NCBI RefSeq assembly: GCF_006345805.1
Contig: NC_043021.1
Coordinates: 9,920,001-9,984,000, forward strand
Direction of reading: 5' to 3'
Source: Octopus sinensis
Lineage: Eukaryota
DNA: 64,000 nucleotides
Under the pieces are notes generated by a model. The model saw only the letters and a list, made by a program, of their open reading frames with translations, made no database searches and was not told where the DNA came from. The translations under genes were made by a program, and so were the position numbers. Below, one piece after another: positions 9,701 to 57,452 of this stretch. Numbering within the stretch: the stretch's first letter is position 1; every line of letters begins with the position of its first letter.

Positions 9701-10718
9701 ATAATAATAATAATAATAATTGTGTACAGTGCTCAGGTGCACTACAACTATAGAGCCTATAGCCATCATAAACTATAGTATAGGCATAGACCCTGTCATC
9801 ATGCTAAAGAAAATAAGTAAACATCCATGTAAGTATAGAGAAATAAAAAGTGGGAAATATTGGAAAGCAAAAAAATGTAGGAGAGAGGGAGAGAAAGAGA
9901 GTAGATTTATATAGAGACACTTCAAAAATTCTAGGTAACACTTGATAGCCTTATAAAATCATTTTTCTGAATGTTAGAGTGGTGCATTGTAATAAATAAA
10001 TCGATAAAAAAGTAATCATTATTTCGCCATAGAAACGACCATTGTGCAGTAAAAGTTGTATTTTGAAATGATAATTGCTAATCTTTAACATCACTTTTCG
10101 CTTTTTTTTTGCAAAAATGAAGTTAGTCGGTTTTTAGGTTGTAGCTATACCAAGGAACATGTCTTCAGTAGCACCGGTATCCACCTAATTTTAGGAGAAA
10201 ACAATCACAGCTTGACTGGGTTGCCAAATCGAGGTCGCATTATATTGTAAAGCGCTTATTATACTGTTTACACATCGGTTTTGTTTTCTTGTGTTGCCAT
10301 TATTTGACCTCACTGCAACTGATCACTGATTGCAAGTATTGCCTATTAGGAAAATAGGATCTGGAAAGTAAAAAAAAAATCAAGAAACGCTATGAAAGGA
10401 AACGGTCTACAGGCACCGGTACGCACCTAATTTGAAGGAGTTGAAGAGAGAAAGGGGGGAAAGTAAAGGTAGAGAAAGGGAGGGAGGAAGAGAATAAGAA
10501 AATGATACAAAGGAAAAAAGAGGGGGAAAGAACAGTACAAACGAAAGAAAGGGTAGAAAAGAACGAAGCAGAGAGAAAGAGGAAGAGAAATAAGTAAGAG
10601 TGAAAGGAGAGGGAGAGAGAGAAAAGTAGAGGCAAGATAGATAGAGAGGGAGAAGGGGAGGGAATAGAGAAAAAAGAGAAGGCATGATTCAAAGAGAGAG
10701 AGAGAGAGAGAGTGAGAG

Positions 10719-11140
10719 AAAGGGGAGGAACACAGAAAATAAAGAGGCAAGATTCAGAGAGAGTGAGTGAGAGAGAGAGAGACAGACAGAAAAAAGAGAG
10801 AAAGGGGAGGAACACAGAAAATAAAGAGGCAAGATTCAGAGAGAGTGAGTGAGAGAGAGAGACATACATAAAAAAGAGAGAAAGGGGAGGAACACAGAAA
10901 ATAAGGAGGCAAGATTCAGAGAGAGTGAGTGAGAGAGAGACAGACAGATAGAAAAAAGAGAGAAAGGGGAGGAACACAGAAAATAAAGAGGCAAGATTCA
11001 GAGAGAGTGAGTGAGAGAGAGAGACATACATAAAAAAGAGAGAAAGGGGAGGAACACAGAAAATAAGGAGGCAAGATTCAGAGAGAGTGAGTGAGAGAGA
11101 GACAGACAGATAGAAAAAAGAGAGAAAGGGGAGGAACAGC
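10719..11140 (+). repeat. GA-rich minisatellite, 80/82-bp units with 162-bp higher-order period
   Basis: AAAGGGGAGGAAC recurs at 10719, 10801, 10881, 10963, 11043 and 11125. Confidence 0.95.
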
Positions 11141-11215
11141 AAAAAAAAAAAGGAGAAAGTAAGATTCAGTGAGAGAGAGAGAGAGGTGGATGAAAACGAG
11201 GTCGCGCTCTTGCAA

Positions 11216-11225
11216 ACGCCATTTT
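11216..11225 (+). promoter_or_regulatory. YY1-like motif (ACGCCATTTT), probable SF1 promoter/TSS neighbourhood
   Basis: Matches CGCCATNTT; lies in a CpG-containing unique segment about 270 nt before the first ATG. Confidence 0.45.
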
Positions 11226-11492
11226 CATAGTTGTTCTTTCTACATTCAACCAACTTGTTTTTGTTTCAGTTGATATTAATTCGTGATGAAGATCCGTTGG
11301 CAGTGAGCTTCCTATTTCCTACTTGCAATAAGCCGGTGGCTTTATTATTTTGCTTCGTAATTAATCTGACAGTGTTTTGTTTTCAACGGAGAATACCTTT
11401 TCCTATACTACAGATTTTTTTTTCTACCGCTTCTAGCACACTCTCTCTCTTAAGACATACATCTATCCCTTTACACACTTTAGAAGCTCAAA

Positions 11493-11532
11493 ATGCTTTC
11501 AGCTACTGGAACCAAGCGACACATGGAATTTG
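11493..11532 (+). CDS. SF1: SF1 putative first coding exon ([13 protein letters not shown] + G)
   Basis: caaaATG with in-frame TAG at 11481 upstream. Ends G|GTAAGT; the phase-1 end fits exon 2 (G+AT=Asp). SATGT resembles the vertebrate MATGA N-terminus. Short, so less certain. Confidence 0.75.
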
Positions 11533-12446
11533 GTAAGTGTTTTCTCTTCGTACTACTTTCTTTTAAAACCTCAAAAAAACCCCCAAAAACAAACTTTATA
11601 TGCCTCAGTTAAATACACACGTATACATGTCCTGGTGTCTTCAAGTACACACATACATGTGTATGTGTATATATATATATACACACATATATATGTCTGT
11701 CTGTATGTATATTTTATCTTTGAATTTGTCTCAATCGAAGCCGAGTTGTTTCAAATTTCAACACACGATAAAAATATGCAGAGTTCAATTTTTTTTTTTC
11801 AATTTAAAACTTCGATAATTGCAACACGCGCGCACACATGCATGTATACATAAACAATGTGGTTATGGAATTATATAGGCTATAGAAGTTCTTTTCTGTT
11901 ATATAATTGGTGTGTGTGTATATATATATATACAAAAAGAGACCGATAGAAGAAGTACTGGGCTTACAAAAGAATAAGTCCTGGGGTCGATTTGCTCGAC
12001 TAAAGGCGGTGCTCCAGCATGGCCATAGTCAAATGACTGAAACAAGTAAAAGAGTAAAGAGTATATATATATATGTATGTATGTAGTATCTATATAAAAC
12101 GCGTGTCTAATATATATGTATCATACATATGCATAATATATGTATAATATATATTCATGTACCTTCATGTACGTATATATACCGCAGGTAGATAGATGGG
12201 ATCTTCGTCGTTCGACAGTGGGGATTTAGTTTGATGAATTGGATTACCTGCTCCGGAATTAATATCGAAGCGGATGAGCATTCTGCAGACACGTGTACCC
12301 TTAACATAATCAAGATGAATTACATGTATACAAGATATACGTTACCACAAAGTTATCTCTGATAACATTAACGCAAGGTGCTTCGCAGTGTGTTTGAACA
12401 CTGGACCTTGAGGTTGCAAAGCGAACCTACATAAAGCACCTACATA

Positions 12447-12495
<49 letters not shown>

Positions 12496-14029
12496 AAAAA
12501 GGTGTTCAGAATGCTGGATGGTTGTAAAGATATATATTTATTTACATATCACATATTATTTCTTCATATTAGCGCTTTCAACTACTCCTGTAGTTTCATC
12601 AGAAATGTCCAATATATATAAATATATATATATGCATGCATGCATATATGTTTTTTGTGTCTGTTTTCCATTGTGACACAAGTTGGGTGGTTAGCTAGGA
12701 TCCAGTGGATTAGAGGACCACGTCGTGCTCCAGTGTTTCAGTTTTTGCCTGGTTTCTATGACTGGATGGCCTTCCTAACGCCAATCACATTACAATGTGT
12801 ACTAATGGCTTTTTTTTTTCCGTGGCATCAGCACCAGTGAGGTGTACTTTGTAAGTTGCAAGAGGAAAATAGCCTCCTTGAAAGGGAGAATAGCGATCGT
12901 TTTATGTGAGAAGTAGAGAGGTTAATATATGATGTGAGGAGCAGAGACTGGTTTGTCGAGGAGATTCATGGCTACTTTGCATTTTATTTGGGTGGGTGAA
13001 GATTTTTGGTGTGGTGCTGCAGAGAGATTAATGAGGTGGCAGTAAGTACCAGAACGTGTATTCAAGGCAACATGGTCCAGAAGGTGAATAGAAGAGTGCA
13101 TGGAGACAGGGTTCTCAGCAAGGGTTGGAAGAATGAGGTGAGAGTGAAGATGGTCAGATCTATAGACGAAGTGAATGATAGTGGAGGTGGTGATCGATGG
13201 GGATTATGAGTGGGAGGATAAATAGATGTCTATTGGGTGTAGATCAGAGAGGAGGGAGTGGTGACTGGCAGTACAGAAATGGTATGAAATGATTCCCGTA
13301 GTAACAGGTGCTAATTTTATGACGTACAGCAACAGAATAATAGAATGGATAGAAGAGTGATATCGGGAGATGAAGGGTAGGGTCAAAGCTTGTAAGAGTG
13401 GTGGTGGGGGGAGTGAGAGATGGCTAAAACAAGGGTAGGGGTGAACAGTGGGAGGAGGGAATTGGTAATTGATAGGGGTGACAATGGATTTAGGAGAGGG
13501 AACTTGTTTACCTGGGTTGAGGAAGGAGAAGAAAAATGCACACAGCTGAAGTAATGGAAATGTGAGTATGCATATGACAGTCTCTCATCCAGTGTCCTTG
13601 TCAAATCTGCAATATATGTGTAGCTAAAGCCCTCCTCCCCCTTACAATACGGCATCATTGGGTCAAATGAAATTTGTTGAGGCAGATATTCTGCAGTCGG
13701 ATGCTCTTTCTCTTTTGTCAAGCCTCACAGTTTCCAAGCAAGGTAATATTTCTCCATGGCTGAACAGGTTTTCACAGAATATTTGCCAACAAACAACACC
13801 ACTAGTTTGATGGTGATACTTGTTTACAACTATTGCATGATGTAAAAACATGGAAACACACACACACACACATTTATATGGACAAGCTCCTTTCTCTTTC
13901 TTGCTACCAAATCCATCCACAAGACTTTGATTGTCCCAGGGACTATACGAGATGACAGTTTCTTAAAGTGCTGTACAATGAGACAACCTGAAACATGGTT
14001 GGAAAATCAGCTTTTCAACTCCTGATGAA

Positions 14030-14096
<67 letters not shown>

Positions 14097-14920
14097 TTGT
14101 GTGAACGTGCACTTTGCAGTGTTTGCTGTTGTCATCTGAGCACATTGTGCCTTTGAATCCTTGTTAAAATGTGATCCCTCTCTTGAAAAACAGATAAGGG
14201 TTAACATCAGGGAAGTCATCCACTTATAAAACAATACCTTAAATGACATTTGGCCAGTCCATGCAAGCATGGAAAAACGAATGTAAAATGAACAAATATA
14301 TCTTTATATATATATATTATATTACATATAATATGTATAGGGTGTGTGATCCTGTTCGGTCATGAATGACTATGGGATTGCACCTAGAAAGTTACCCTCT
14401 GAGGCACAAGTCCAGGTAAGGTTGTTTATTGAAGACCAGCAGTCACCCATGCATACCAGCCTCCCCTCTCCATGCTGCTGATGATATCCAAGTGAAAGGC
14501 AAAGGCCCATACAACTTGGCACCTGTGACATTGCAACTCATTTCTACAGCTGAGTGAACTGGAGCAACGTGAAATAAAGCATCTTGCTCAAGAACACAGC
14601 ATGCAGTCCAGTCACTCTAACCACTGAGCCATACACTTTCACTATAATATATATTATATATATATATATAAAATTTGTATGCATATATCATTTGTATATA
14701 TTATTTTCTTATATTCTTTTACTTGTTATTAGCTTGCAGCCATGCTGTCGCACTACCTTGAAGAATTTTAGTTGAATAAATCAACCCCAGTACTTTACTT
14801 TTTTAAACCTGGTACTTTATTCTATCGATCTCTCTAGGTGAACTGCTAAGTTACGGGTGTATAAATACACCAACACCTGTTCACAAGCAGTGGTGGGGAA
14901 CAGACACACAGATATACACA

Positions 14921-14960
<40 letters not shown>

Positions 14961-17900
14961 TATATACATACATGATGGGTTTTTTTTGAGTTTCTGTTCA
15001 CCAAATCCATTCAAAAGGATTTGGTCAGCCTGAGGCTATAGTAGAAGGCATTTGCACAAGGTGCCATGCAGTGGGATTGAACCTGGAATTGTGCGGTTGG
15101 GAAGCATGTTTCTTACCACACAACTACTTTTGTGCTTTAATAATATAACATATAATATAATCCAGACACATTTTTTCCTTTCATTCCTTTGTCGTAAAGT
15201 GTTGGCTTAAAATATCTAAGACTTTTCCATTCTTCCTGACCATCAAGCTAATACACTTGCTTGTTGTTCCCTCACCTGTCTTTTGTTTTCTCTACATTTG
15301 GAACATATATATATATATATATATATAATATAAAGATCATATGTTATATAATGTAGGTGCAGGCATGGCTGTGTGGTAAGTAGCTTGCTTACCAACCACA
15401 TGGTTCTGGGTTCCCACTGCATGGCACCTTGGGCAAGTGTCTTTTACTATAGCCTCGGGCTGACCAAAGCCTTGTAAGTGGATTTGATAGATGGAAACTG
15501 AAAGAAGCCCATCGTGTGTGTGTTTGTGTGTCTGTGTTTGTTACTCCACCATTGCTTTACAGCCGATGATGGTGTATGTACGTCCCTGTAACTTAACGGT
15601 TCAGTAAAAGAGACTGATAGGATAAGTACTTGGCTTACAATGTCCTGGGGTCAACTTGTTTGACTAAAGGCGGTGCTCCAGCCTGGCCACAGTCAAGTGA
15701 CTGAAACAAATAAAAGAATATGATCTTTGATTTGTTTCAGTCATTAGACTGTAGCCATGCAAGGGCACACGACTTTGAAGAATTTTCGTCAAATGAATCG
15801 ACCCTAGTACTTTAATTTTCTTTAAGCTTGTTGCTTATATGTCTCTTTTACCAAACCGTTAAGTACAGGGATGTAAAGACACCAACACCAGTTGACAGGC
15901 AGTGGAGGTGGGGACAAGCACATGTACACACATATATGATGGGCATATATATATATATATAGGGAGAATTCACAAAAAAAAAAGCAAAAGGCGAAGACAG
16001 ATGGTGTAGACAACAAACAGATGTATTAGTTTAATGCTTGGGAAGTGAAAATGTCTTTAACATTTCGAGCCTACGCTCTTCCACAGAAAGAAACAAGGAG
16101 AGAAAATAATGTGTAGTGGCTAGCGGTGCTGTTATGACTGTATGGTAAGAAGTTTGCTTCCCAACCACATGGCCTTGGGTTCAGATCCACTATGTGGTGG
16201 CACCTTGGGCAAGTGTCTTCTACCATAGCCTCAGGCTGACCAAAGCCTTGTGAATGGATTTGGTAGGCAGAAACTGAAAGAAGCCTGTCGTGTGTGTATA
16301 TATATGTACACAAAAACTATTGAAATAACATCCTATAACCTACAATCACAAGTTCTAGCTACACGATTTCGATTAGGTCCATTATTAGTGTTAGTAATTA
16401 AAGCATTATTATTTCTATTACTATAAAAAATATCTAATTTGAATTAGATATTTTTTGTAGTAATAGAAATAATAATACTTATTAACACTATTCTATCATT
16501 TCCCTTTGCCAAACTGTTAAGTTTCACAATTTTGTAAATAATAATAATGGTATTTTTTATAAGCTTAAAGCAATCACTCTGCAAATGGCTATATATATAT
16601 ATATATTTATATATACATACACACAAACTTGAGGAATGACCACTAAAGTGGACACCTAATATGCATACAGAAAAGACATATATATATATGATGATGATGA
16701 TATATATATATATATATAAAAATAATATATATTGATGTGTCACTGTTTGCCCCCCCCCCACCACCACTTGACAACCAGTGTTGGTGCGTTTATGTTCTTG
16801 TAACTTAGCAGTTTGGCAAAAGAGACTGATAGAATAAGTACCAGATAAAAGATATATATATATATTACCCATGCCAGTGGCATGTAAAAAGCACCATCAG
16901 AACGTGGCTGATGCCAGCGCCACCTGACTGGCATCCGTGTCGGTGACATGTAAAAAGCACCAACTGATCGTGGCTGTTTGGCAGCCTCTTCTGGCCCCTG
17001 TGCCGGTGACACGTAAAAAGCACCCACTACACTCACGGAGTGGTTGGTGTTAGGAAGGGCATCCAGCTGTAGAAACACTGCCAGATCAGACTGGAGTCTC
17101 CTGGCTTCCCAGACCCTGGTCGAACCATCTAACCCATGCTAGCATGGAAAACGGACGTTAAACAATGATGATGATATATAGTATACATATCTACAATTAT
17201 AATTTTAAATAATGCATTTACTATGGACTTTTTTTGAGAAAAATGTGACGTGTGGTATGCCACCAATTTTTATCTGTGTATCAAATTTGATATAATTGTA
17301 ATTTATCCACACTGGAAGATATTTGTTGAAATTTTCATTTAAAAATACCCGTTTTTCTGAAGGTTATGAGGAAACAAATCTGACCTGTGTGAGTTTTCTG
17401 AATCTCCTGACCCGGAAATTTTTGTCACCACAAATTCATATAAAATCAGAATCTAGACTATTTGAAACATATTTGTAGAAAATTTCATTAAAAAATGTCC
17501 ATTTTTCTGGAAGTTATGAGGAAACAAAATCAGTGGGGCATGCAGTTGTGAGACTAAGATCACTTTCGACTGAGTGGGGCAAAGGTAGAGAGGGAGGTGG
17601 CTCTATGCTAGGATATCAGGAGTTCAGGTATGAAAGAAAGGGCCAGAACAGAACAGGTTTCTTGCTGTAGAGGAGCTACGTGGCTACTCATATAGAAGAG
17701 TAGCTGGGAGCAACTGAGGTCGAGGTGGAAAGAGATAAAAACAGTGTTGGTGGAAGTCAGTGGGGACCCTCAAGGTACAGGGGTCAGAAGAACAGGGTAT
17801 GTAACTGGATAGAAGTTGGAGAGTGAAGAGTAGTTAGAGCTAGGGAATAGTTGAGGGGTGAAATATAATGAATGAGAAGCAAAGCTTGTGGGATGGTTGA

Positions 17901-20900
17901 TGATAAATATACATTGGAGGCAAGATAAGTAAGAGTACTGGTGACTGTTGAGATTGGGTAGCATATAAATATTGTATATGCAATATATTATAAATATGTT
18001 ATACATGTAATATAGTAATCCCGTGCCATGTCGCGGTTCACCTATCGTTTATTATTTAAGCTAACATCGATTTCTGCGTGCTGTTGTTTTGCATTTATGA
18101 TAAAATAAATATATACAAATTATAAAAAGAATTTTAAAATATATACAGTACAGTACTGTTTCTACTTCGTGAGGTGGTTTTGGAACATAACATCTGTGAT
18201 AGTCAAGGGATTACTGTATATATTTGAGATATATATGTATGTATATATATATATATATGTATATACACACACATTCACTTGCTAGGAGTTACTTGTTCCG
18301 AGAATCTGAGTGAAACTATTTAGAATAATTTTCACAATATCATGTTTGTATGTGTTTATTAAAAGAGACATATGTATGTATTTATATATACATACATATA
18401 TATATATATTAATTTCTACATTTTCCTATCTTTGCTGATGTTATTTTATTAGTTTGAATCTATGTATCTCTCTCTCTTTCTCTCATGGACTACATACACA
18501 GACAGGGTAGCCCAATACAATTCCATACAAACATATTAAATGATGGTTTGAATTCTGAGCCATATACACACTCCTGCACAAGATAATTATTACAAGATAT
18601 TACAATTGTTTCAAGTTGACAACTTTTACGAAGTGCATTGTGTGAACTATGGTTGTAGATCTATGTTTTGTGATCATTAGTAAAAAGAAACCTACTGGAA
18701 GACCATATGCATTGTGTGCGTGTGTATCTTTTAGACTTTCTGTGACTCTAAAAATACTGGAATATTTAGTTACAGCCTTTGATGTTTTAATTTCAAAGCT
18801 TTACCTTTCACCCTCCCTGTTGACACAAAGTACAGGTCAAGTGCTGAGACCAATAAGGCATTCTACTGCCTTGATTCCTTTTGATACCAGCCTGTTTGAA
18901 ATCATCTTTGATTCCATGATACAAACTTTTGTTTTAAAATTATCTAAATTAAAATCTTGTATTGAAATTCCTTGTTAATTTATGTTCTAAATACCAAAGT
19001 TATAATGGCTTGTTATTTTATTAAATTCTTCATTATTTTCAAAATCAATTGAAACAGAGTCGGTGCTTTTCAACAGAAATATTGTGACAAAGGGATTTAA
19101 AGAAAAATAATGTACTAGATACATAGTCTGAATAAGATGGGTTGATCACAGCAGGAATGCTTTTGATCATAGGTGTATACTGTTTGAGCTGACCTTGGAC
19201 TAACCAGATCAGCACAAATGTTTTATAAAGTGGTTGTGCTCTTGGTGAAGGCATCTCTATCAGAAGTTTTTGGTACATGAGATGTTTAAGCAACCCATCT
19301 GTAAAAATTGTCTTCTTGAACTGCCCTATGAACCCAGGTGTTCTAGCCATGTCTGACTATCCCTTAGTTTTGTGATATCCAGAACTGCATTGTCCAATGT
19401 CGTTTGATGTAATTTAGTCCCAGGTTTTCCCTGACTGTACAGACCTCTTATCAAAGGTGTTCTTGTTATCACTCCACATCTTGTTTTTAAGATTTGTGAT
19501 TTAAAAAACTGATTTGAGGAAGTTTTGTCTTCCCACTACCTTTAGCAGGTTGTGTAGGCATGTAGGAATGGATAGCTGCTCCCTTGTTTTTTTCGATAGC
19601 TTATTAATGTGACAGAAAATTCAGTAACATAGCCATATCAGTGAACTAAAAACAATTACTGTTGTATATCAAGCATAATAGACTTTCACATCATGTCAAC
19701 ATACATAAATAATGAATGAATTAGAGCTGTGGAGATACTAAAGTTGTTATTTATGTCAGTGCTACTTAAACAGATTCATGATCAAAGGTGTTTCAACCGT
19801 TTCAATCTTTTTCTATTCTAGACATTGTATAATGTATATTAAACTACATTATCCAGTGTCTTTTTATTTATCACATTTTAAGACGGCAGTTGTGATGTTC
19901 AAGAGAGATTCGGTTCCCCTGTTTCTTGTATATTGAATCATTGCGGCCTTCTATCTAGTTATGTATTTGAGTATACACATGCATGCATGTCTCCTGCATT
20001 ATAAAAACATTGCTTTCCTAAAATCTTAAAACTTATTTTTCATGGAAATCAGTGCTATGGTGAAATTTCAGGAAAACTTGAGGGATGCATGTAAATATAG
20101 TGGATACACACATATTTTATCAGTGTGTCCTTTTTAAAAAAAAAAAAGATTGAAGGGGTTTTATTTAAATAAGATTTGGCTGCTACTTCTAATAGTTTGA
20201 GTGACCAGGTAGTAGAAGTTCCCTTGTTTAAAGGATAAGCAACTTTAAAAAACTTTCGTTGCCTTCAACATTTTAGTATTTGACCTCTGTCTCAAGGTAC
20301 CCATGTTACTATCGTCACACCACAAAATTGTTCTATTTAGATGTTTACAATATTTAATTGGAGCTCATTCCTTCCGTAGCTACTTTATTAGTAACTTAAT
20401 ATCCATTTCCCTTTGCTAATGACACTTCTCTAATTTTTTTCTTGCTGTAACCCATTTACAAAACTGTGTCTGATATTTTTTTTTCTCAAGGTTTGATTTT
20501 CCATTTTTTTTCTTTCCATTCTAAAATTCAAAATTACCATATTTGTTATATTAATATTTTACAGACATCTATGTTGTTGCTTATCTTTGAGTACTTACAT
20601 GCTGGTGGCACGTTAAAAGCACCATTCAAGTGTGGTTGATGCCAGTACCACCTGACTAGCCCTTGTGCCGGTGGCATGTAAAAACCATCCACTACACTCT
20701 GGATTGGTTGGCGTTAGGAAGGGCATCCAGCTGTAAAAACCTTGCCAGATCAGATTGGAACCTGGTACAGCCTTCTGGCTTGCCAGTCCTCAGTCAAACT
20801 GTTCAACCCATGCCAGCAATGGTGATGATGATACACAATCACAGAATAATGCTTATTCTGAACAAATGTTTAGAAAAAACCTTTGAAATGCTTAATTTAA

Positions 20901-23900
20901 TATGGGATCTACTTTCAAGATGTAGAAGATCTGGAAAAGGGACAATTTTGTTTTTTATATTTATAATTGAATAAGATCTGAATTGTAAGAAAGTTTACAT
21001 TTGAAATTGTTTTTATATTTTTATTATAAGTTGCTGGCTTTGTTCAGTTTTGTTGTTCATACTGTCTCTTCCTGGTCTAGTCACACTGGTTAGCCATATG
21101 TAGGGCATCCAGTTGTGAAAATATACAATAAAATCTATTACGCATTGTTAATAATGCAAAATATTGCCTTGCCTTCTACATTAAGAGGATTGCTGTGGCA
21201 GGTGTAGGGTCAGTACAAGTATCGTTGTCCTCTTTTGACAACCATCAAACAATTCCACCATCATTTTTTTTTTCTTTAGCTTTATTACATATATTTAATA
21301 ATGTAGTAGCAGGAGATGCATTAAAATATCAGCCGGTTAGATGAACAATAGTCATTTGACCTGCTAGAAATAGCTTTGAAATCAAAGTGGAAGAAGAAGT
21401 CCTGCTTGATCAGGGTTGAACTGCAGCCAAATAGTTTCAGATGATGAACTAAGAAGGGAGCCTGTACTTGTCTAGACTCTGCTAGAACCCCTTAAATCAG
21501 TAGTTCTCAACAACCATTTTTTGCCTGTGAACCCCTTTGATTCCTTTTTTACTCAGGTGGGCCCTCATAACCATTCTTTATTTAAAAAAGTCTTTCTCTT
21601 TTTATAATTATTAGCAGTATCGCCCGGCGTTGCTCAGGTTTGTTTCGACCCTTTAGAATTGGAATTTTTGAAAAGTAAAAAGTTTGCATTATGTAGCTTG
21701 TTATTCTCTTTAAGTGAACATTTTTCTGGTTGAAATACACCGAAAAATGGCGACACGGCAGTAAAAAAATCGTAAAAAATAGGGATTTTCATAGAAAAAA
21801 AGCACCTTTTTGATGTAAATAATTTTTGGTCTTAACATGGTCCGATTTGAATTTTGTCTTCTACAGAATGAAGAGCAAGCCTTCTATCATGCTCTCAATT
21901 TTGGTCAGCTTGCGCCACAGGGTCTCGAAGGAGATAGTGTTAGTTGAAGGCTACCAAACCTGCCATACACAGACAACTACAGCTTTATATATATAGAGAG
22001 ATTATTAGGAATTGTTAAAATATTTTATGTATTATAGAAATATATATAAATTTATTGCACATAAACTTTAACCACAAAACCTTTTATGAACCCCCAAGGG
22101 TCATATGAACCCTGATTGAGAACTATTGCCTTAAATTGTCCTATTGTTTTGAAAGGATTTGAAAAGACTGGAAAATCATGACTGGAATACCATTGATTAA
22201 AGATTATTTGCTCACTCTACAGGTTTCAATGGAGTTATAGTCTTTTTTTTTTATTAAATGTTTCCCAAGCTGATCTTTTTATTTGTTACAAGTAACCTAC
22301 TGAAATCTTATGTAAAAGTGCATAGACTTTTTTTTATGCATCTCTGATAAATTGTTGGAGTTATTTTAACATCCAATCAGTTTTATTTCAAGTCCTAAAT
22401 ATTTATTTAAATACTTATAAACTGTAATTTGCAAGTGTTAAAATTATAGTGCATGCATATTATCCTTAACACTTGCTTCTGCTAGCTAACCTCCTTATCT
22501 TGTATAGTCTTATATACACTCCTTTCTTCTCATGGGTGTAGTTAACTAAATTATTCAACAAAGCAGCTTTACTCTTACTTAAGCACTGAATTAAGTTGAA
22601 TCTTTGACTTTTTTCTGTGTATATCAGAAATATCTATTGTAAATTTAATGCTGAAAGCAGTTTTTTTTTTTATACCAATCTATCTTTTGTTGAAGAATAT
22701 CATCATCATCATCATTGTTTAACACCTGCTTTCCATGCTAGCATGGATTGGACGGTTCGACTGGGTCTGGGAAGCCAGGAGGCTGCACCAGGCCCAGTCT
22801 GATCTGGTAGTGTTTCTACAGCTGGATGCCCTTCCTAACGCCAACCACTCCGTGAGTGTAGTGGGTGCTTTTTACGTGCCACCGGCGCAGGTGCCAGGCG
22901 AGGCTGGCAACGGCCACGATTGGTTGGTGCTTTAACGTGCCCTGTTGCAATTGTGAAGTTTATTGAGGAAATGTGACTTGCAGAAAATACCAATTCAAAT
23001 TTTTGGTTGATGTTTAACATTATTACTGGAATAACTATGAAATTTTGCAGTGAAAGGGTTAGATATAATTACCGACCTTGGTAACTTGTTAAATTCATAT
23101 TTACTGAGTTAAGATTTGAACTTGGTTGGGTAGATTTTCATTTATTTATTTTTACTTATGTTGACTTAGAATTTTAAATTTAAACTTTTGCTCCAATATT
23201 TCATATTCTTTCTACTACTGGTGCCATGTAAAAAGTACCCAGTACACTCTGTGGAGTGGTTGGTGTTAAGAAAGGCATCCAGCTAAAGAAACTAGGCCAC
23301 TTGTCAGTCTGTCCAGCCAATGCCAACATGAAAAACGGACATTAAATATTGATAATGATTTGTTGTTTGATTGGGGCTATGTTGGGAAACTGTCTTCAGT
23401 GGAGTTAGTCCAATGCATCAATCTCACTACTTTGGTACTTGCTTTTTTAATCTTGTAAGGAACAAAAGGCAACCTTTGGTATAAAGGACAGAACTAAATA
23501 CTGTTAAGATATTTTCATTTGACTTATATATGCATCCATTGATGGGTAGACAATTTCCATTTGCAACATTTCACTTGAGAGTCTATGAATGACCTGAGGC
23601 TATGGAAAACACTTGCCCAAACTAGTGAATACTGGGACTGAATTGAGATCCAAGTAGTGAAATAGGTTTTTAGCTACAAGACCATATATACTGTATGAGA
23701 ATAGTTGCTTCTTGTTACCATTTTAAGATTCTGTTTCTGGGGGATCCAGACTATATGAACCAAAAGAAAATATCTATCAATAATTTAAAGCAGTGGTTCC
23801 CAAACTTTCTCGGGCTCCACCCACTTGACATTCCTAGTGCCCTCACCCAAACTAACCATCACAATCATAGACTTCTTTCTGAAGCAAATTCGAAGCAACT

Positions 23901-26490
23901 GCCTTTCACAAATAAAAATTAACCTAATGAATTGCCACTCCATTATTGCCCCACTTTTTACATGAATCACTAACCTATTATTGCCCTACTTTTCTACAAC
24001 ACTCCTTGGAACTTTCCACCACCACCCCTCTGGGGGAAGGAAGAGGCAATTTTGCTCACTTTGGGAACCACTGATTTACAGTATTGGCAGGGCTCTTATT
24101 TGTCAAATACTTACAAGTTCAAATCTACTGGCTGTTATCATTCTGACAGCATTTATGATATTTGATCATTAGTACTAGATAATTACATTTTGAAGTGTCT
24201 GAAGTATATACACTCCCCTGCAATGCTATTGATATTCCATCTAATACTGAATGAGCTTTTAATGAGACTTTTCATCTAGCAGGGGTCTTGTTTGAGGTGA
24301 CTTGATGTTTTTTTTTTTATACCACTGTGATAAGAAGCTTGCTTCCCAACCACATGGGTTTAGGTTCAGCCCTACTGTATGGCACCTTGAGCAAGTATCT
24401 TCTACTATAGCTCCCCACCAAGGCTTTGTGAGTGTATTTGATAGATGGAAACCAAAAGAAGCCTGTCGTATATACAGGGTTGGCCTAAAGTCACCCAACA
24501 GTAAATCAAAATTCAAGGTGTGGCTGTGTGGTAAGATGCTTACTTCACAATCACATTGGTTCTGGGTTCAGTCCCATTGCATGGCACCCTGGATAAGTGT
24601 CTTCTACTATAGCCTTGGGCTGACCAAAACCTTGTGAGTGGATGGTGGATGGAAACTGGAAGAAGCCCATCATATATACCTATGTATATATCAGTGTGTG
24701 TGTTTCTGTGTTCCTATTTGTCTCCCACCACTACTAGGCAATTGGTGTTGGTGTATTTACGTCCCTGTGACATAGCAGTTCAGCAAAAGAGACCTATAGA
24801 ATAAGTACTAGGCTTAAAAAAAAATGTCTAGTGGTCGATTTGTTCAATAAAACACTTCAAGGCTGTGCCCTAGCATGGCCAGAGTCAAAATGCCTGAAAC
24901 AAGTAAAAGCTTAAAGATAATGAAGAAAGGATAGGAGATGTTAGCAAAGTTTGTGTTTGGACAAGTTTTGGAAAAGCTCATCTACATGGTATATATATAT
25001 ATATATATACATACATTGCTGTTCGGAAAAAGTCCTGAGAGTGGGAATGGAAATAGAAATTGCCAGAATGAATGCATACAGTTCTTGAGAACAAAGCAAG
25101 CTTTGCACTGTTTCAGCAGCAAAACCTCTCAATATTTGTTCAATCACTAGAATCTGTTCAGACGAACACATGCATTACAGGGAGAGAGCAAAAATGCCAC
25201 CCCACCCCAACTAACCATCACAAATATAGACTTCTTTCTGAAGCAAATTCAAAGCAACTGTATTTCATAAATAAAACATAACCTTATGAACGCATCATTT
25301 TGTTGTTTTTACATAAATCGCTATCCTATTATCGCCCCACTTCAACACCTCCTTGGAATTTTCCACCGACCCCAAGGGGGCAATACTGCCCACTTTGGGA
25401 ACCACTGGTTTAAAACAATGTGAATAAATAAGCATTACTTTAACCCTTTAGTATTTAAACCGGCCATATCTGGCCAAAATAGCTAATCTGTTTTATGTTC
25501 AAACTGACCAGATCCAGGCCCTCACACCTACCCTACAATGTTATTCTACATGAAGTAATTGCACCATCAAGATCTTGAAGATATGAGACAATGCATGATT
25601 AATTCAAATCAATGTGAATCAATAAGCGTTATGTTTGATAGAATAATCTGAACACTAAAGGGTTAAACAGAGTAATCAGAATGCTACAGGGCTATAGTGT
25701 GCTGTGCATAAAAAAAGGTTGGGGAAATCTGTGGTGGAGCTGGTTGCTTCAAAGTACAACAAAGACCTCTGCCAAATCTTCAGAATTTTTGAAACTTGTG
25801 CCAACTTTACTTCTATTTCTATTTTGGATTTGCACTGTTAAGTCTGTTAGGATCCTTATTCACCTTTAACAAGACGTTGCTTAGTTCTGGGTTAGCAGTG
25901 ATTGAGTAGATTGCATGGTCAATCAGAAACATAGCTGTGACTATCACAGACATTTGTATGTAATGTGAGAGTTGAGGGAAAATGGGTTGCTGTTTCTACC
26001 AGTCTGAGCTATTTGTGTACAATCTCCCCATTTGCTGTGACGATAGACTCTCCTTCCCATCTTTGCTTGGCAAGTAGTCTTCCCTCCCCCACTTGGGCGG
26101 TTGGGTTCTTCCCTTTCTGGTTCAATCTGTGTTTCTCCCCTTGGGTATAATACATTTAGTTTGCTGAATACTAAACGTGCTTTTGTTTTTAGGTCTTGTA
26201 ATGTTTTCTTATCTTTTTGGGTTTTGCTGTAGATTGGAATGCTGAGAGGCGGAAACAGAAGAAACGTAGTCGTTGGGGTAATGAAGAAACAGATAAAACC
26301 ATCATTCCTGGAATGCCAACTGTTATTCCTGCTAACCTTTCTGGTGATCAGGAGAAACAATATTTAGGTAGGTTTGCTTGGAAAAACTTTTTGAACTTTG
26401 GTAGAAAACAGTAATAAGGAAAATCCAGATTGTGTGTTTGTATATAAGTGTAGATGTATGCATTTGGGCATGTGTTGATGTATTTATATT

Positions 26491-26522
<32 letters not shown>

Positions 26523-26958
26523 CATACACATACATGGCTGTGTGTATGGGCATATATATGTATATATAAATATTTGCATGTGTATGTATGAGCATCTGTT
26601 TGTGTGTAATTGTGTGTGTGTGTGTATATATATATGTAAGTATGTATGCACATACACATATACACAAATGTCTAATATACTTTTATAAATGTGTATATAA
26701 TGCATATATATGAGGGTACATAAATACATGTTAGTGAGTGTGTATAATAAAGATTTATGCAAGTGTATATATTGTGTATTCAAACGTGAGTAAAACATAG
26801 ATTTATGTGTGTATATATGTATGCAATAATTCTCATACATAAATTTCTTTATATTTAATGGAGCTATATTTTTTAGTTAGTTGGAATAAATATTGAGGTA
26901 CTGGTAAGTTTGTCTGTCATATGGTGTTGTAGTTGCTTCCCTTTCAGAGTCTTGTAAG

Positions 26959-29900: not shown

Positions 29901-32900
29901 TCTATATCCTGCTTACTAGATTTGTTTTTTTTCTTTAGTAGGCACTTTAGTAGCAAATAGGACAGGTTATCATGAATGGTACCAACCAGTTACTCTAACA
30001 TTTCTCTGTTGCTACAAATAGTTACCTTTATCCTCTACAAATTTTTCCTCTTTCATTTCTGTCCCAGGTGAGATTTGTGTGTGTGTGTGATAATGTGGAT
30101 GTTAAATGATGATGATGATATATGTGTGTGTGTCTGTGTATATACACGTAAGTTAACAAACAGGAGATAGTGCTCAATAAACATAACAGTTTATTTATTT
30201 ACACAAGGGTGATGATTCACTGCAAATTATTGGGCAGATGCACCAAGTTAGAAACATAGAAAAGAAGCCAAGAAACCTCAATTTCAAACGCACACACACA
30301 CACACACACACACACATTCATTTATCTTCATTATTATTGTTCAAGAAAACAGTTGCTTCTTCAGCCATAACCATCATATGAAATAGGGATTCCTCCCATC
30401 TCCATTTGACTAGGTTATTTTAGGTCTAACTCCTTCAAGTCCTCCTCCACTAAGTAGACTCCCTTGCTCTAGAGTCCTATATGTTGTTGATACGGTTTAT
30501 CTTTTTAGGGTGAAGGCGTATAGCTTAGTGGTTAGGGTATTTGGTTCATAGTTGTAAGATCATGAGTTCAGTTCCCAGCGACATGTTGTGTCTTTAAGCA
30601 AGACACTTTATTTCACATTGCTCTAGCCCACTCAACTGGCAAAAATGGGTAGTATCTGTATTTCAAAAAAGGCCATCCTTGCTGCACTCTGTGTCATGCT
30701 GAATCTCCCTCAGAACTACGTCAAGGGTCCATGTGTCTGTGGAGTGCTCAGCCACTTGCATGTTAATTTCACAAGCTTTCTATAGCCTTGGGCTTGACCA
30801 TACCTTGTAAGTGAAAGTAATAGGAGGAAACTGAGCTGAAACCTGTCTTACATTGATAGCATTTGAAAAGACTCTTTGTTTCTGTCTCATAACTTAGTGG
30901 TTGTAGTGTGTACGTCTCCAAAATAAGACCGCTCTTAATATATACTTGGGTCAGTTAGAAATCCTTTAAGATGCTCCACTGATGCTGCAGTGTAATGACT
31001 GAAACTAGTAAAGGACTGTATAGTTAATTGCATATGAAAACTAAGTTAAGATATTAATTGCAAAGTTCACCTTTTTTCTCAAGAAATTGGGAATTTTTTT
31101 TCTATGTATAAGTATTGTAGTGGTGTTGATTTATTGTTTGGTTGTTATGAATTTATCTAAATTTAAGATTATAGATTATCAATTAGTTCAACTGTAGTTG
31201 GAAGGGTTTTTATTTATTTATTTATAAAGCCTCAAACTGGCCTCTATTGATGTTGTATCTCTTTAATTGATAATACTTGCTGCTATTATAACCACTTCAT
31301 TCCAGTGCACCTGCAAATCGAGGAGATAAGTCGTAGACTGCGAACAGGAGACCTGGGCATCCCACCTAACCCTGAAGACAGGTTTGATAGCGACCTGCTG
31401 CTGCTATTGAGCAGTAGTAACCTTATCATTGTTTTAACTTCTTTTTCAACAGCCAGGCATGCAAAGAGTCAGTGCAAGAAATCTCTTTCTCGCTCTCTCT
31501 TTTTCTCTCAAATTAAAAGTTGGATGCAACATTAAAGTTATATTTCCAAAAAAATGCACACATCTTCTGTAATGGTATCATTTCTTTTGATTTTTTTTGT
31601 GTTGATTTTTTTTTTAACTTTAAATAAACAATCAGTATTCCTTTCTGTATTTAAAGACACACAAAAAAAGGGAGATTTACCTTTAAGTTCAATAAACCCC
31701 TCCCCAATGACATCCAACTTTTTCAGAATTCCAATAATACATTTATTCTATTTTGTTTAAATACTTGTTCATTTTTCAGCTGGTTGTAGTTGGTGTAAAT
31801 CTTTGTTAAAGTCTAGCTGCTAGGGTATCTGTCTTAGAGATATCACCTGCTTTCTTTCTGGTACCATTTATTTGATCAGTTCACCCCTCCCCTTCTGTTC
31901 TTCCTTCTATGCCAATTATCACTGCTACTAAATCTAGTCACTATTTGTCTTCAACTAATATCTTTTATATTATTTATTTTGAGAACAGACTTATTTGTCC
32001 TATTAATGTTAAACTCAAGAATTTTAATACTTTTCATTATTCAGTGTTGTAAAAAAAATTACTGCTAAGATTTTATGCAACTCAGTTGATGGCTCTGGTT
32101 TTAGTCATTGCAAATCCTGCTCTTAGAAAAAGTCCTAAATCATAAACATCTGTGGTTCTATGTTAATTCTGCTGTTAACGTTACAGAAGGTTTACATTAG
32201 ATTCATTTTGTTGTCTTGGATAGTTTGTGATGTAATTTTCTTTTACTTCTGACATTTTCTTTACTCTCAACATTTCTTTCTAAGTGTTCTCATAACTGCT
32301 TGCTTTGCTTTTTCTTTCAAGTTTTCTGATTTTATTAGTCTTTACTCTCTTACGGTGCCATTACATCGATCAGGTCTTATATAACAAAACAATTTCGTTA
32401 TAAATGTTATTCCTTCAAGTGATTTAATTAGATCTTTTTAGAGATTAACTTGTCCCTGCACTTCTGCGTCCTCCAGTCAGACAATAATGTTGATAATCCT
32501 TACAGTAGATACCCTCATCCTATGTTCCATGGTATCCACAAGTGTCCCCTGAGACTAGAAAAATTATTACTTCTTTCTAATGTCATAGCTGCAGCTGGGC
32601 TATGGGGACAACCACAAAGTCCAATAACTTTTGACTGCTAGCTTTTTTCTCTTGTTTTATTCTGTCTTTGTCTAAGGTTTTCTGAGTCTTCAAAATGCTC
32701 TTAAAAACACAAGGAACTTATGGAATTCAAAGAGTGTTTCTGTGCATCCTCAGTTGTTTCTCCTGTATTATTGCACACCTGTTGCTCCAAGTGGTTTGAT
32801 TTTGTATAGGTTTTGATAACCTGAATATTTGTAAGAATTTTAAATATTTGGAGCAGCTGGTGTTGTTGTTTCACCCCCCCCCGCCACCCCAGGTCATCAC

Positions 32901-52000: not shown

Positions 52001-53833
52001 GAAGGTATAGAATAGGGGTTCTCTACCAGGGTCCATATAAAATTTTGTTGTTAAAATTTATCTGCTATAAATTGGTTATATTTCCACAGTACATAAAATA
52101 TTTAAACTTTTTTTTTTAAGAAGTTGTTCTTAATAATACTTAATTGTAAAAGTGTAATAGGATTTTCTAAACATCGAGAGACTATGAGGGTCCTGTTGAG
52201 TAAAATAGGAATCAAGGGCACAACGTGGTTGAGAACCACTGATGTAGGATGTACTTCATTTGGAAAGGCATGAGTTGAGTACGGCCAGATTGGATGTGAA
52301 GTATGAGATAAAGGAGAGTTTTGGTTGAGAGTGAGCTCAATAAATGACTGGTCAGTATATAGTAGAGTATATAGAAAGGCGGCGAGCTGGCAGAAACGTT
52401 AGCACGCCGGGCGAAATGCTTAGTGGTATTTCGTCTGCGTTACGTTGTGAGTTCAAATTCTGCCACGGTTGACTTTGCCTTTCATCCTTTTGGGGTCGAT
52501 AAATTAAGTACCAGTTACGCACTGGGGTCAGTGTAATCGACTTAATACCTATGTCTGTCCTTGTTTGTCCGCTCTGTGTTTAGCCCCTTGTGGGTAATAA
52601 AGAAATAAGTATATAGTAGAGAGGGAAGGTGATTTCATTTGTCATATGGATCATGATGAAATGTTTAGAAATGAGAATGGATGCGAGCCAAAGATGCTCT
52701 GGTATGTCTCAGGATGAGACAATCCACAGTTGAAGTGCTTGGTGACGACATAGCTGTTTCAAAAACCTATTTTTTCACAGTAAGAAAATGAGCATAAATT
52801 TAAGGATTTTATTTTAAATGTTACTTTAGTTAATATTTCTCTTGTTGTGACTGAACACTTTTATTTATTTATTTTTCCAAGGTTAATTTTGAGTTACGAC
52901 TAATTTGTTTATAACAATGGTTTTGTTCGTTAGTGGCGTTCTGAACCTAATTTCTTTTGTCTCCTTGTAGTTGAAAAACAGCATTTTACTGTTTTCAGTG
53001 TTTATTAATTGCAGCTGTACCTGATTAAAACATTGCTCGTTGTAGCTTCTGAAAATATTTCAGTGCAGATAAAGCAATGAATTAGCAAACAAAAATGTTA
53101 TAAAGATATAAATATACAGTAAAAGCGTAATTTATAAGGACTGCTAAATAGTATTGAATGTAGATGTGTACTTTATTTACAGAAAAACCCTGCAAAAAAC
53201 AAAAATCTTAGAAACATAAAAGATATTATAACATCCAGTACTGCATTCTTTTGCTTTTTGGGTGTTGCCAAATATTTTCATTCTATTTCTGTATTTTTAT
53301 TTTAGTAGCTGGATAGTACATAGTAGTGAGCTAACACAATGTTCAATATTTATGATGTTGAAATAATCATCATCATCATCGTTTAACGTCCGCTTTCCAT
53401 GCTAGCATATGTTGGACGATTTGACTGAGGACCGGCGAAGCAGATGGCTGCACCAGGCTCCAATCTGACCTGGCAGAGTTTCTACAGCTGGATGCTCTTC
53501 CTAACACCAATCATTCCGAGAGTGTAGTGGGTGCTTTTACATGACACTGGCACGAGGGCCAGTCAGGTGGTACTGGCAACGGTCACACTCAAATGGTGCT
53601 TTTTATGTGCCACCTGCACAGGAGCCAGTCCAGCGGCACTGGCAACGATCTTGTTCTAATGTTTTTTCACATGCCACCGGCACAAGTGCCAGTAAGGCGA
53701 CACTGGTGACAATCATGCTTGAATGATGGCATTACATGCCACCGGCAATGAAGGCAGTCAACTGCTCTGGTAACGATCATACTCGGGTGGTGCTCTTAGC
53801 GCTCTGAAGAAAATTGTAAGGTGACCACACATC

Positions 53834-55596: not shown

Positions 55597-57452
55597 ACAC
55601 AAAATTTCCTAACAACTTTATGTACTTTTAAATGATTTTTATCTCCATTTTGAATCAAGATGATTATTTCTGACAGGTGGGGTTAATGATTAAATTTAGA
55701 AAAGTTCAACTACAATTCTAGATTAAAACAAAATCCAAAAACTAAAACAGCTAATGATTTGACACTGTTAAGTGTAGATCACATGAGAGAAAGGTTAATT
55801 AGAAATTTCCTTGATGATTGAAAACTAATTTTCTACAAGCTGCTGCTGTTTAGCCCTAGGTTAGTCTTGATTAAACAGACCTGTGATCAAGTATTCAAGC
55901 TGTGATCATTCAGTTTTTTTTTCAAGTCAGTGTATCCAGAGCTACATTATTCTTGGCATGTATCATCTTCCCTTTTTTAAAAACAGTGGGGGAGATTTCA
56001 CTGCTATTTCTAGCAGATTGAGGTTGGTGTTTTTATCCTTAGGTCAACCCTGATCAAGCAGACCGATAATCAAGGACATTTCTGCTATAATAATCAATCT
56101 ATTTTAGTATGTACTATACAATTCAGTTTGTCTTTATTTAAGGTGTGGGAGGTGTAATTTAAGATAGGCTGATGTATTAAAGCAGTTGGTCTGTGGCACC
56201 TGTGTCTGATAATCCTGTAAATTCAATTCTACTACCTCCATGTTGCAAGTTTATAGTAATGAACTTGTATAATTCTGGCAAGTTGAGTGACAACAGAAAG
56301 GGCTCAAGCTGTGGTAGTTGCACTCGTGTACGTGATGTTACACCCCCATGGTGCTTGAATATTGTTTGGGTTTAGTACAGTGGTTTGTTTGTTTTGTTGT
56401 CATCTCTCACCTTATACTGAAGTGGTATCAAGTGTATAAAAAGCGCAGGAGGTAGGATGCAGCTGTTGAATGAAAACAGGCACTGGCTGCATTGTGTGTT
56501 TATTGCAAAAGCTGTTGTGCAGCTGCAATGTTGCTTCTGCAACTCTTATGGTGGGAGAGGAAAAAAAAAATGCAGAGACAAATATTGAAATTCTATGTTA
56601 ACTCTATTGTAGAGAGCAAGCAAAAATTTAAAAACAGAAACACGTAAGATGATAAAGCTAATGATGGCGTTCAACATTTTATGATTGATGAAGATATTCT
56701 TGATAATTAGGTTGTGTGTGATTGTTGTGTAGTCCCACCCCACCATTCCTGACCGAACAGACCAAAACGCATTCTGGCTATGGTCAGCTTGTCTCTTTAT
56801 TTTCTCATTTAAAATGATGTATTACAGCAGTTGGTCTGTAGCACCTGTGTCTGATAATCATGTAAATCCAATTCTACCTCCACGTTGCAAGTTTGTAGTA
56901 ATGAATTTGTATAATTCTAATATACATCTGTTTTTAATTTTATCATTTACTTAAGACATAGATATTAGATTCAACTTTTTTAAGCTTTCTGTCTACAAAT
57001 TTATAGACTTGGGAGGGCATTTATTTACTTTAAATTATTCTGCTATGGTGTTTGTTGTGGTTGGCGTTAGGAAGGGCATCCAGCTGTAGAAACATTGCCA
57101 GATAAAACTGGAGCCTGGTGCAGCCTTCTGGCTTCCCAGATCCCCGGTCGAACCGTCCAACCCATGCTAGCATGGAGAACGGACGTTAAACGATGATGAT
57201 GATGATGAGAACACATGTTATCTTAACTATGAAGTGAAATTGAAGGCATAATTTTTGTTCATTTATATAATATACTGTTAGGGTAAGATCAACAAAAAAG
57301 TACTCAATCCAGTGAGAGATAAATATCATTTAATGTACACAGTACAAGGATATGAGCTAATACTTTCTTGCTTGGAGACACAAGGCGTGTTATAAAAACC
57401 TGCCTATACCCACATCTCCAAGCAAAAAACTATTAGTAGCTCATCTGGATGG

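Follow-up and report, generated by a model that had tools for sequence, protein, structure and literature searches.

An upstream acceptor with a near-consensus branch site at octopus SF1 exon 2 is best read as a lineage-restricted cryptic site

The + strand of the 64-kb stretch of octopus DNA analyzed here (the window) carries the 5′ part of the cephalopod gene for SF1 (splicing factor 1), the branch-point-binding protein. At the 3′ end of its first intron, a sequence with every appearance of an acceptor lies exactly 40 nt upstream of the acceptor that produces SF1. We favor the reading that this upstream site is an ordinary, lineage-restricted cryptic acceptor or, at most, a minor alternative one. 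We give this reading about an even chance of being correct, and we prefer it to a regulated AS-NMD switch, the several forms of which remain distinctly less probable even when taken together. The preference rests on the appearance of productive junctions only, neutral-rate evolution of the upstream element, variable spacing between the two AGs, absence of the arrangement outside Octopus, the triviality of the premature stops that it would introduce, and the doubtful sign of the feedback that it would mediate. From these observations we infer that use of the upstream acceptor is low or unregulated; nothing indicates that the concentration of SF1 tunes the choice of AG.

SF1 exons were located by tblastn using a human SF1 query, and splice sites were then placed manually. 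Exons 1–7 lie inside the window, and the gene extends past its end. The coding part of exon 1 (11493–11532, + strand) provides 13 codons and the first base of codon 14 and is followed by the donor GTAAGT from position 11533. Intron 1 (11533–26232, +; 14,700 nt, phase 1) separates it from exon 2 (26233–26367, +; 135 nt), which encodes the RSRW motif, the part of SF1 that binds U2AF65, together with the start of the helix-hairpin domain. The remaining exons, all on the + strand, are exon 3 (31306–31381), exon 4 (61650–61802), exon 5 (62638–62758), exon 6 (63033–63185), and exon 7 (63779–63897). The spliced N-terminal 265 amino acids share 96% identity with a Logan transcript protein from another cephalopod and 78%–87% with mollusc SF1 proteins. 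The first 58 residues are 100% identical to UniRef A0A0L8FNC3 of O. bimaculoides, and RefSeq XP_014788302.1 from the same species starts with identical residues. Exon 1 has the same coding sequence at 10001–10040 of the corresponding locus in the O. bimaculoides reference (GCA_001194135.2), in which intron 1 measures 13,475 nt. With this shorter intron, and with exon 2 identical but its flanks diverged, that reference is distinct from the window, which therefore derives from a closely related Octopus genome.

The upstream site consists of the branch-site-like sequence TACTAAAC (26169–26176, +) and a pyrimidine tract with acceptor, GTGCTTTTGTTTTTAG (26177–26192, +), whose AG occupies 26191–26192 and is followed by G at +1. 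In its best register, TACTAAA, TACTAAAC agrees with UACUAAC at six of seven positions and retains C3, U4, and A6, the positions with the highest information content for SF1 binding (PMC3064769); an affinity value of SF1 for UACUAAA was not found in that study. No other acceptor of the gene within the window matches UACUAAC as well, the rest reaching 4–5/7. The putative branch A26174 lies 18 nt from G26192 of the upstream AG, and 8 of the 10 positions from −14 to −5 are pyrimidines. The site thereby matches the sequence definition of a U2-type 3′ splice site, with a branch-site consensus 18–40 nt from the AG and a pyrimidine tract leading into YAG without an AG between. By a heuristic score that considers only the pyrimidine tract and AG, the upstream AG obtains 4.4 vs 0.6 for the productive AG, and the two rank 16th and 96th among the 846 AGs of intron 1; by this measure, 15 other AGs of the intron score above the upstream one. 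The initial annotation of this DNA had reported TACTAAAC at 26169–26176, GTGCTTTTGTTTTTAG ending at 26192, a 40-nt extension, and three stops, all of which proved correct. Its description of a strong acceptor 40 nt upstream of the productive AG also holds in silico, since every U2-type consensus feature is present and the site outscores the productive one. The accompanying phrase "near-perfect SF1 binding site" refers to a 6/7 match that keeps the key positions; TACTAAAC is not UACUAAC itself.

We also considered how readily such a sequence arises by chance. The 8-mer TACTAAAC occurs once per strand in the 64-kb window, and the composite of TACTAA[N], pyrimidine tract, and YAG occurs three times per strand. 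For a composite motif to fall within 100 nt upstream of one of the gene's six acceptors, the chance expectation is ~0.03, a suggestive figure, although the pattern was chosen post hoc.

The segment between the two AGs (26193–26232, +; exactly 40 nt, with the productive AG at 26231–26232) serves the productive acceptor as its AG-free zone and contains that acceptor's own branch-site candidates along with a G-interrupted pyrimidine tract. The candidates are TTGTAAT (26196–26202, +), with A26201 positioned 31 nt from the productive AG, and TTCTTAT (26206–26212, +), with A26211 at 21 nt. Both match YNCURAY at six of seven positions, equal to the best candidates at the gene's other five acceptors, and the AG-free zone of 38 nt falls within the 34–76 nt range of the gene's acceptors. 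The tract, with 6/10 pyrimidines at −14 to −5, is the poorest among the gene's six genuine acceptors. Weakness of the productive branch site holds only relative to the upstream site; the branch site is typical for this gene, and the weak part is the pyrimidine tract. Overall, the productive acceptor is not abnormal for SF1. UCUU-type motifs are also present in the 40-nt segment.

Transcript-level evidence within reach comprised two gene models and one mRNA contig. Both O. bimaculoides models (A0A0L8FNC3 and XP_014788302.1) use the productive junction, as does the contig, which derives from another coleoid (Logan SRR8281671). In all three the joined sequence reads GAATTTG/ATTGGAATG, giving EF/D at the protein junction. 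A word-indexed protein search returned no octopus N-terminal SF1 variants among its matches, the octopus proteins all corresponding to the productive junction, and an exact look-up of the genomic ORF 26217–26414, intended to catch products containing the extension, found it not on record.

Between the window and O. bimaculoides, the upstream element changes at the rate of neutral intron. O. bimaculoides retains TACTAAAC and the upstream AG, with a linker between them, ATTGCTTTTGTTTTTTAG, that is 18 nt long vs 16 nt in the window. The two AGs are separated by 38 nt rather than 40, and the 38-nt extension is still frameshifting, with its stop supplied by the TAG of the productive acceptor. Identity across the region around both acceptors (26161–26232) is 85%–90%, compared with 85%–89% in flanking intron 1 and about 85%–93% in the flanks of exon 2. 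Within that region, the part from the branch site to the upstream AG (26169–26192) is the least conserved, at 73%–79%, and the 40-nt segment bearing the productive acceptor signals is the best-conserved intronic stretch, at 92%–97%; exon 2 is 100% identical. A deep-intronic look-alike motif that served as a control (19736–19759) is retained in O. bimaculoides at 24 of 24 positions. Because this look-alike is retained equally, retention of TACTAAAC between two Octopus species is uninformative as to function. Weak constraint is possible, two species being too few to exclude it.

Beyond Octopus, an exhaustive search of representative proteins yielded one genomic ORF spanning exon 2, from a more distant coleoid (locus L006). 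Its exon 2 shares 83% identity with the window and 90% with the coleoid mRNA contig; identity between exon 2 of the window and the two other coleoid sequences is 82%–83%. The productive AG of L006 has a good branch site of its own, TACTGAT, at 22 nt, and an AG-free zone of 50 nt; the next AG upstream is not accompanied by a TACTAA-type motif plus tract, so no decoy is present. MAFFT alignment of the octopus and L006 intron ends was ambiguous, and we claim no homology between them. The position of intron 1 is common to L006, the limpet Lottia, a second lophotrochozoan locus (L007), and the mammal Puma, and phase 1 was also found in Lottia, Puma, and L006. The upstream decoy arrangement is absent at the orthologous acceptor of all four. 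No further cephalopods were recovered by profile search, and a scan of JGI metagenome DNA gave 0 matches. As far as can be seen from these sequences, the decoy appears to be restricted to the genus Octopus. The conservation of motif and 40-nt spacing that the initial annotation had suggested checking in other cephalopods and molluscs thus extends, for the motif and upstream AG, to O. bimaculoides, but the spacing there is 38 nt and the arrangement is missing from L006 and Lottia. Purifying selection and conservation beyond close relatives, which would be expected of an autoregulatory AS-NMD poison site, are not seen at an element that changes at the neutral rate and is not found in L006, Lottia, L007, or Puma.

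If exon 1, which ends at 11532, is joined to 26193, the result is a 30-codon ORF with a 30-aa product, ending at the TGA at 26243–26245 (+). Under the exon-junction rule, which is the basis for NMD eligibility of such an mRNA, the transcript would be eligible because this TGA lies 122 nt, more than 50 nt, before the exon 2–3 junction. Stops are found in the three frames at 26199 (TAA), 26230 (TAG), and 26243 (TGA), which bears out the statement that the extension is closed in all three frames, but this closure is not special. Of the AGs in intron 1, 28% are followed by a 53-nt stretch with stops in every frame, and a premature stop would result from use of any of the 12 AGs located ≤300 nt upstream of exon 2. 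The "poison" property is therefore trivial, being common to every AG this close to the exon.

The 3′ end of intron 1 comprises a tandem pair of acceptor modules, each complete. In the reading we favor, the downstream one would be ancestral and productive, its position and phase being common to mammals through molluscs. The upstream module (TACTAAA, a U-run, and TAG/G at 26190–26193) would have arisen in the octopus lineage through ordinary drift in a T-rich intron. The choice of AG would be set by the choice of branch site: following the first-AG rule, branching at A26174 is predicted to lead to the AG at 26192 and branching at A26211 or A26201 to that at 26232. Transcripts using the upstream AG would carry a premature stop and, as noise from unproductive splicing, would probably be removed by NMD. 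Complete silence of the upstream site would be surprising given its better branch-site match, its tract, and the G at +1; were it used substantially, it could no longer be regarded as noise.

The best-surviving alternative is that the upstream acceptor is truly used and lowers SF1 output via NMD, under the control of something other than SF1 excess. We consider this unlikely, although less so than the readings discussed below. Its forms include constitutive use, a QKI/HOW-like STAR competitor, a PTB- or U2AF-like factor acting at the tract, and SF1 itself with the opposite sign, favoring the distal AG; the same low likelihood applies to these options jointly. The pairing of a strong upstream site with a weak productive tract is in keeping with such control, as are the UCUU-type motifs of the 40-nt segment. 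Competition between QKI and SF1 for ACUAA branch sites has been described in mammalian cells (PMC13004596), and AtSF1 favors distal AGs (PMC12746065). Against these points, the gene models and contig lend no transcript support, there is no conservation beyond Octopus, ACUAAA differs from the canonical QKI core ACUAAY, and the sequence alone names no regulator.

That SF1 limits its own synthesis was the proposal that drew attention to this site. Under this proposal, excess SF1 binds TACTAAAC and directs splicing to the AG at 26192, and NMD then destroys the frameshifted mRNA, closing a negative autoregulatory loop; we judge it improbable. The candidate site has in its favor the 6/7 match to the optimal SF1 site with C3, U4, and A6 retained, the complete acceptor followed by a premature stop that precedes the downstream junction by more than 50 nt, and the persistence of both motif and upstream AG in O. 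bimaculoides. AS-NMD is also a frequent mode of control among RNA-binding proteins, with U2AF1 and possibly U2AF2 as examples of 3′ splice site factors, and a poison site is known in RPS3 (PMC6547761). The expected junction, however, appears in none of the two models and one contig, and the element evolves at the neutral rate, with variable spacing, and is absent from the distant coleoid and all non-cephalopods examined. We found no literature report of self-regulation by SF1. The direction of the effect is a further difficulty. A high-affinity site saturates at low SF1, and additional SF1 would then favor the weaker productive branch site; in Arabidopsis with impaired SF1, ~85% of changed alternative 3′ splice site events shift to the upstream AG (PMC12746065), which is the opposite sign and would make the feedback positive, not negative. 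On both grounds, the direction assumed for the loop is doubtful. Negative autoregulation is thus unsupported rather than refuted.

A bolder form seems to us similarly improbable: octopus SF1 would sense its own concentration through branch-site choice, its optimal site marking a poison acceptor 40 nt ahead of a productive acceptor kept weak on purpose, such that the ratio of the two lariats, and with it that of NMD-targeted to productive mRNA, tracks free SF1. One possible variant is that the 30-codon ORF acts as a uORF, with re-initiation at the Met of GMPTVIP producing SF1 without RSRW.

It is equally improbable, in our estimation, that TACTAAAC is the true, though distal, branch point of the productive AG and the place where SF1 lands, with the AG at 26192 skipped in the second step. 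TACTAAAC is the best match near exon 2 and lies 58 nt from the productive AG, and lariat mapping in Arabidopsis shows that an AG beyond the first is used in 5,305 of 13,873 introns, which are enriched for SF1 binding (PMC12746065). Arguing against skipping, the upstream AG sits at the optimal 18 nt with a good tract and YAG/G, and no RNA structure masks it. In animals, the AG that comes first downstream of the branch site is selected as the spliceosome scans, and under this rule the upstream AG should be chosen. The productive AG, for its part, has adequate candidates at 21 and 31 nt and an AG-free zone of 38 nt that is normal for the gene (34–76 nt). The corollary, that SF1 bound at TACTAAAC would support productive splicing of its own pre-mRNA, we likewise think improbable.

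Several known systems resemble parts of this arrangement. Its geometry recalls that of Drosophila transformer (tra), in which SXL blocks U2AF at the upstream tract in a sex-specific, not autoregulatory, manner. In tra the strong upstream acceptor is the default and shortens the ORF, and functional protein comes from a weaker acceptor downstream; octopus SF1 would behave likewise, with recognition of tract and branch site deciding between the two. Unlike in tra, where SXL has this role, no blocker is known at octopus SF1. The plant precedent for choice between proximal and distal AGs is similar in that SF1 binding near the branch site influences which nearby AG is used (PMC12746065). It differs from a poison-site model for the octopus gene because AtSF1 favors the distal AG, with binding enriched in introns that use distal AGs, and because the plant protein has an extra RRM and action on its own gene was not shown (PMC12746065). 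Work on QKI and SF1 is pertinent insofar as a UACUAA-type branch site can be read by several STAR/KH proteins with opposite outcomes, but it concerns cassette exons in mammalian cells, and we found in it no link to the SF1 gene itself (PMC13004596).

The closest regulated parallels are the poison 5′ splice site of RPS3, exons 3a/3b of U2AF1, the candidate poison exon of U2AF2, and the SRSF7 and PTBP1 cases, in which, as would occur here, a frameshift brings in a premature stop, making the mRNA an NMD substrate, and the alternative site bears a motif matching the encoded protein (PMC6547761). In cases of the RPS3/U2AF1 type, however, the isoform has been seen, its level changes when NMD is blocked and with the amount of its own protein, and it is usually conserved, whereas conservation at octopus SF1 ends at the genus. 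The upstream site is otherwise much like ordinary cryptic 3′ splice sites in long introns, being lineage-restricted, evolving at the neutral rate, unproductive if used, and one of many high-scoring AGs in a T-rich intron. It departs from the usual cryptic site in its unusually good branch-site match and its unusual proximity, at 40 nt, to a real acceptor.

For SF1, unlike most early 3′ splice site factors, we found no report of a homeostatic splicing loop. If such a loop did operate here, it would be the first autoregulatory loop described for a branch-point-binding protein, and a lineage-specific one; built on the protein's own optimal branch site, it would constitute an elegant and easily testable sensor. 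If the site is only cryptic, it would indicate that the T-rich introns of cephalopods hold many consensus-grade pseudo-acceptors, any of which is automatically "poison" when near an exon. Because of this, a good motif together with a premature stop does not by itself argue for regulation; conservation and supporting reads are needed as well.

Other explanations were set aside more readily. A recursive splice site is contradicted by AG/GTCTTG at 26191–26192 and beyond, which matches GTRAGT at 2/6 positions and lies only 40 nt from the exon. NAGNAG or other short in-frame tandem acceptors do not fit spacings of 40 nt and, in O. bimaculoides, 38 nt, both of which shift the frame. RNA structure that hides or presents either AG was rejected on folding energy (MFE −20.8 kcal/mol, z = 0.16). 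A transposon origin of the decoy was rejected since 25700–26232 is single copy in the window and in loci L005 and L006, and no known RNA family is involved, the whole window giving no Rfam match. One point that speaks against the cryptic-site reading is the tract of the productive acceptor, the weakest among the gene's acceptors in this DNA, a feature often seen at regulated sites.

Two SF1 gene models from Octopus bimaculoides depart from the exon series present in the window. In the UniRef model A0A0L8FNC3 (P0001), exon 2 is spliced straight onto exon 4. The exon passed over, exon 3 (31306-31381), is 76 nt long, such that leaving it out shifts the reading frame, and its donor (GACAG|GTTTGA) is poor. 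If this skipping is real, and not a model error, it would represent another candidate unproductive SF1 isoform. The RefSeq model XP_014788302.1 (P0122) contains KPPADYNVIKEII, and exons 5 and 6, which encode part of the KH domain, are therefore missing from it. The window holds these two exons in intact form (62638-63185), and their omission from the RefSeq model probably reflects a gene-model or assembly problem.

Two independent Logan transcript contigs, L002 (SRR4181789) and L003 (SRR11939892), encode an SF1 with 90% amino acid identity, apparently that of another mollusc. Each carries, within positions 1-260, ATTCCAGCATGCC in place of the ATTCCTGGCATGCC found in relatives. The former is one base shorter, the difference falling within a conserved stretch of 10 codons, and the called ORFs consequently begin at MPTVIP. 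The shortening could mark a paralogue or pseudogene, or stem from an editing or assembly artefact; alternatively, the contigs could represent a genuine isoform with a shifted frame.

L006 (10001-10423), a genomic contig from a more distant coleoid that spans SF1 exon 2, was reached through an ORF in which TGA had been translated as Trp (MSAISYWWWCC…). Evidently the metagenome assembly ENA ERZ21867824 handled this contig as prokaryotic, and it is therefore host cephalopod DNA within a metagenome.

The SF1 introns and the upstream region contain at least 10 copies, 70-90% identical, of an interspersed, SINE-like repeat of approximately 250 nt. Six of these lie at 1734-1983, 16928-17174 (minus strand), 22706-22939, 53370-53628, 57057-57202 (minus strand), and 63458-63712, with further copies elsewhere in the window; one copy stops approximately 65 nt upstream of exon 7. 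Immediately upstream of exon 1, a CT/AG-rich, tandemly repeated low-complexity block (10390-11253) gives rise to a spurious 287-aa "SLSLSL" ORF on the minus strand. Long TA/TG/CA microsatellite blocks additionally occur directly downstream of both exon 1 (11610-11700) and exon 2 (26440-26680); these are largely common to the window and O. bimaculoides, and differ in length.
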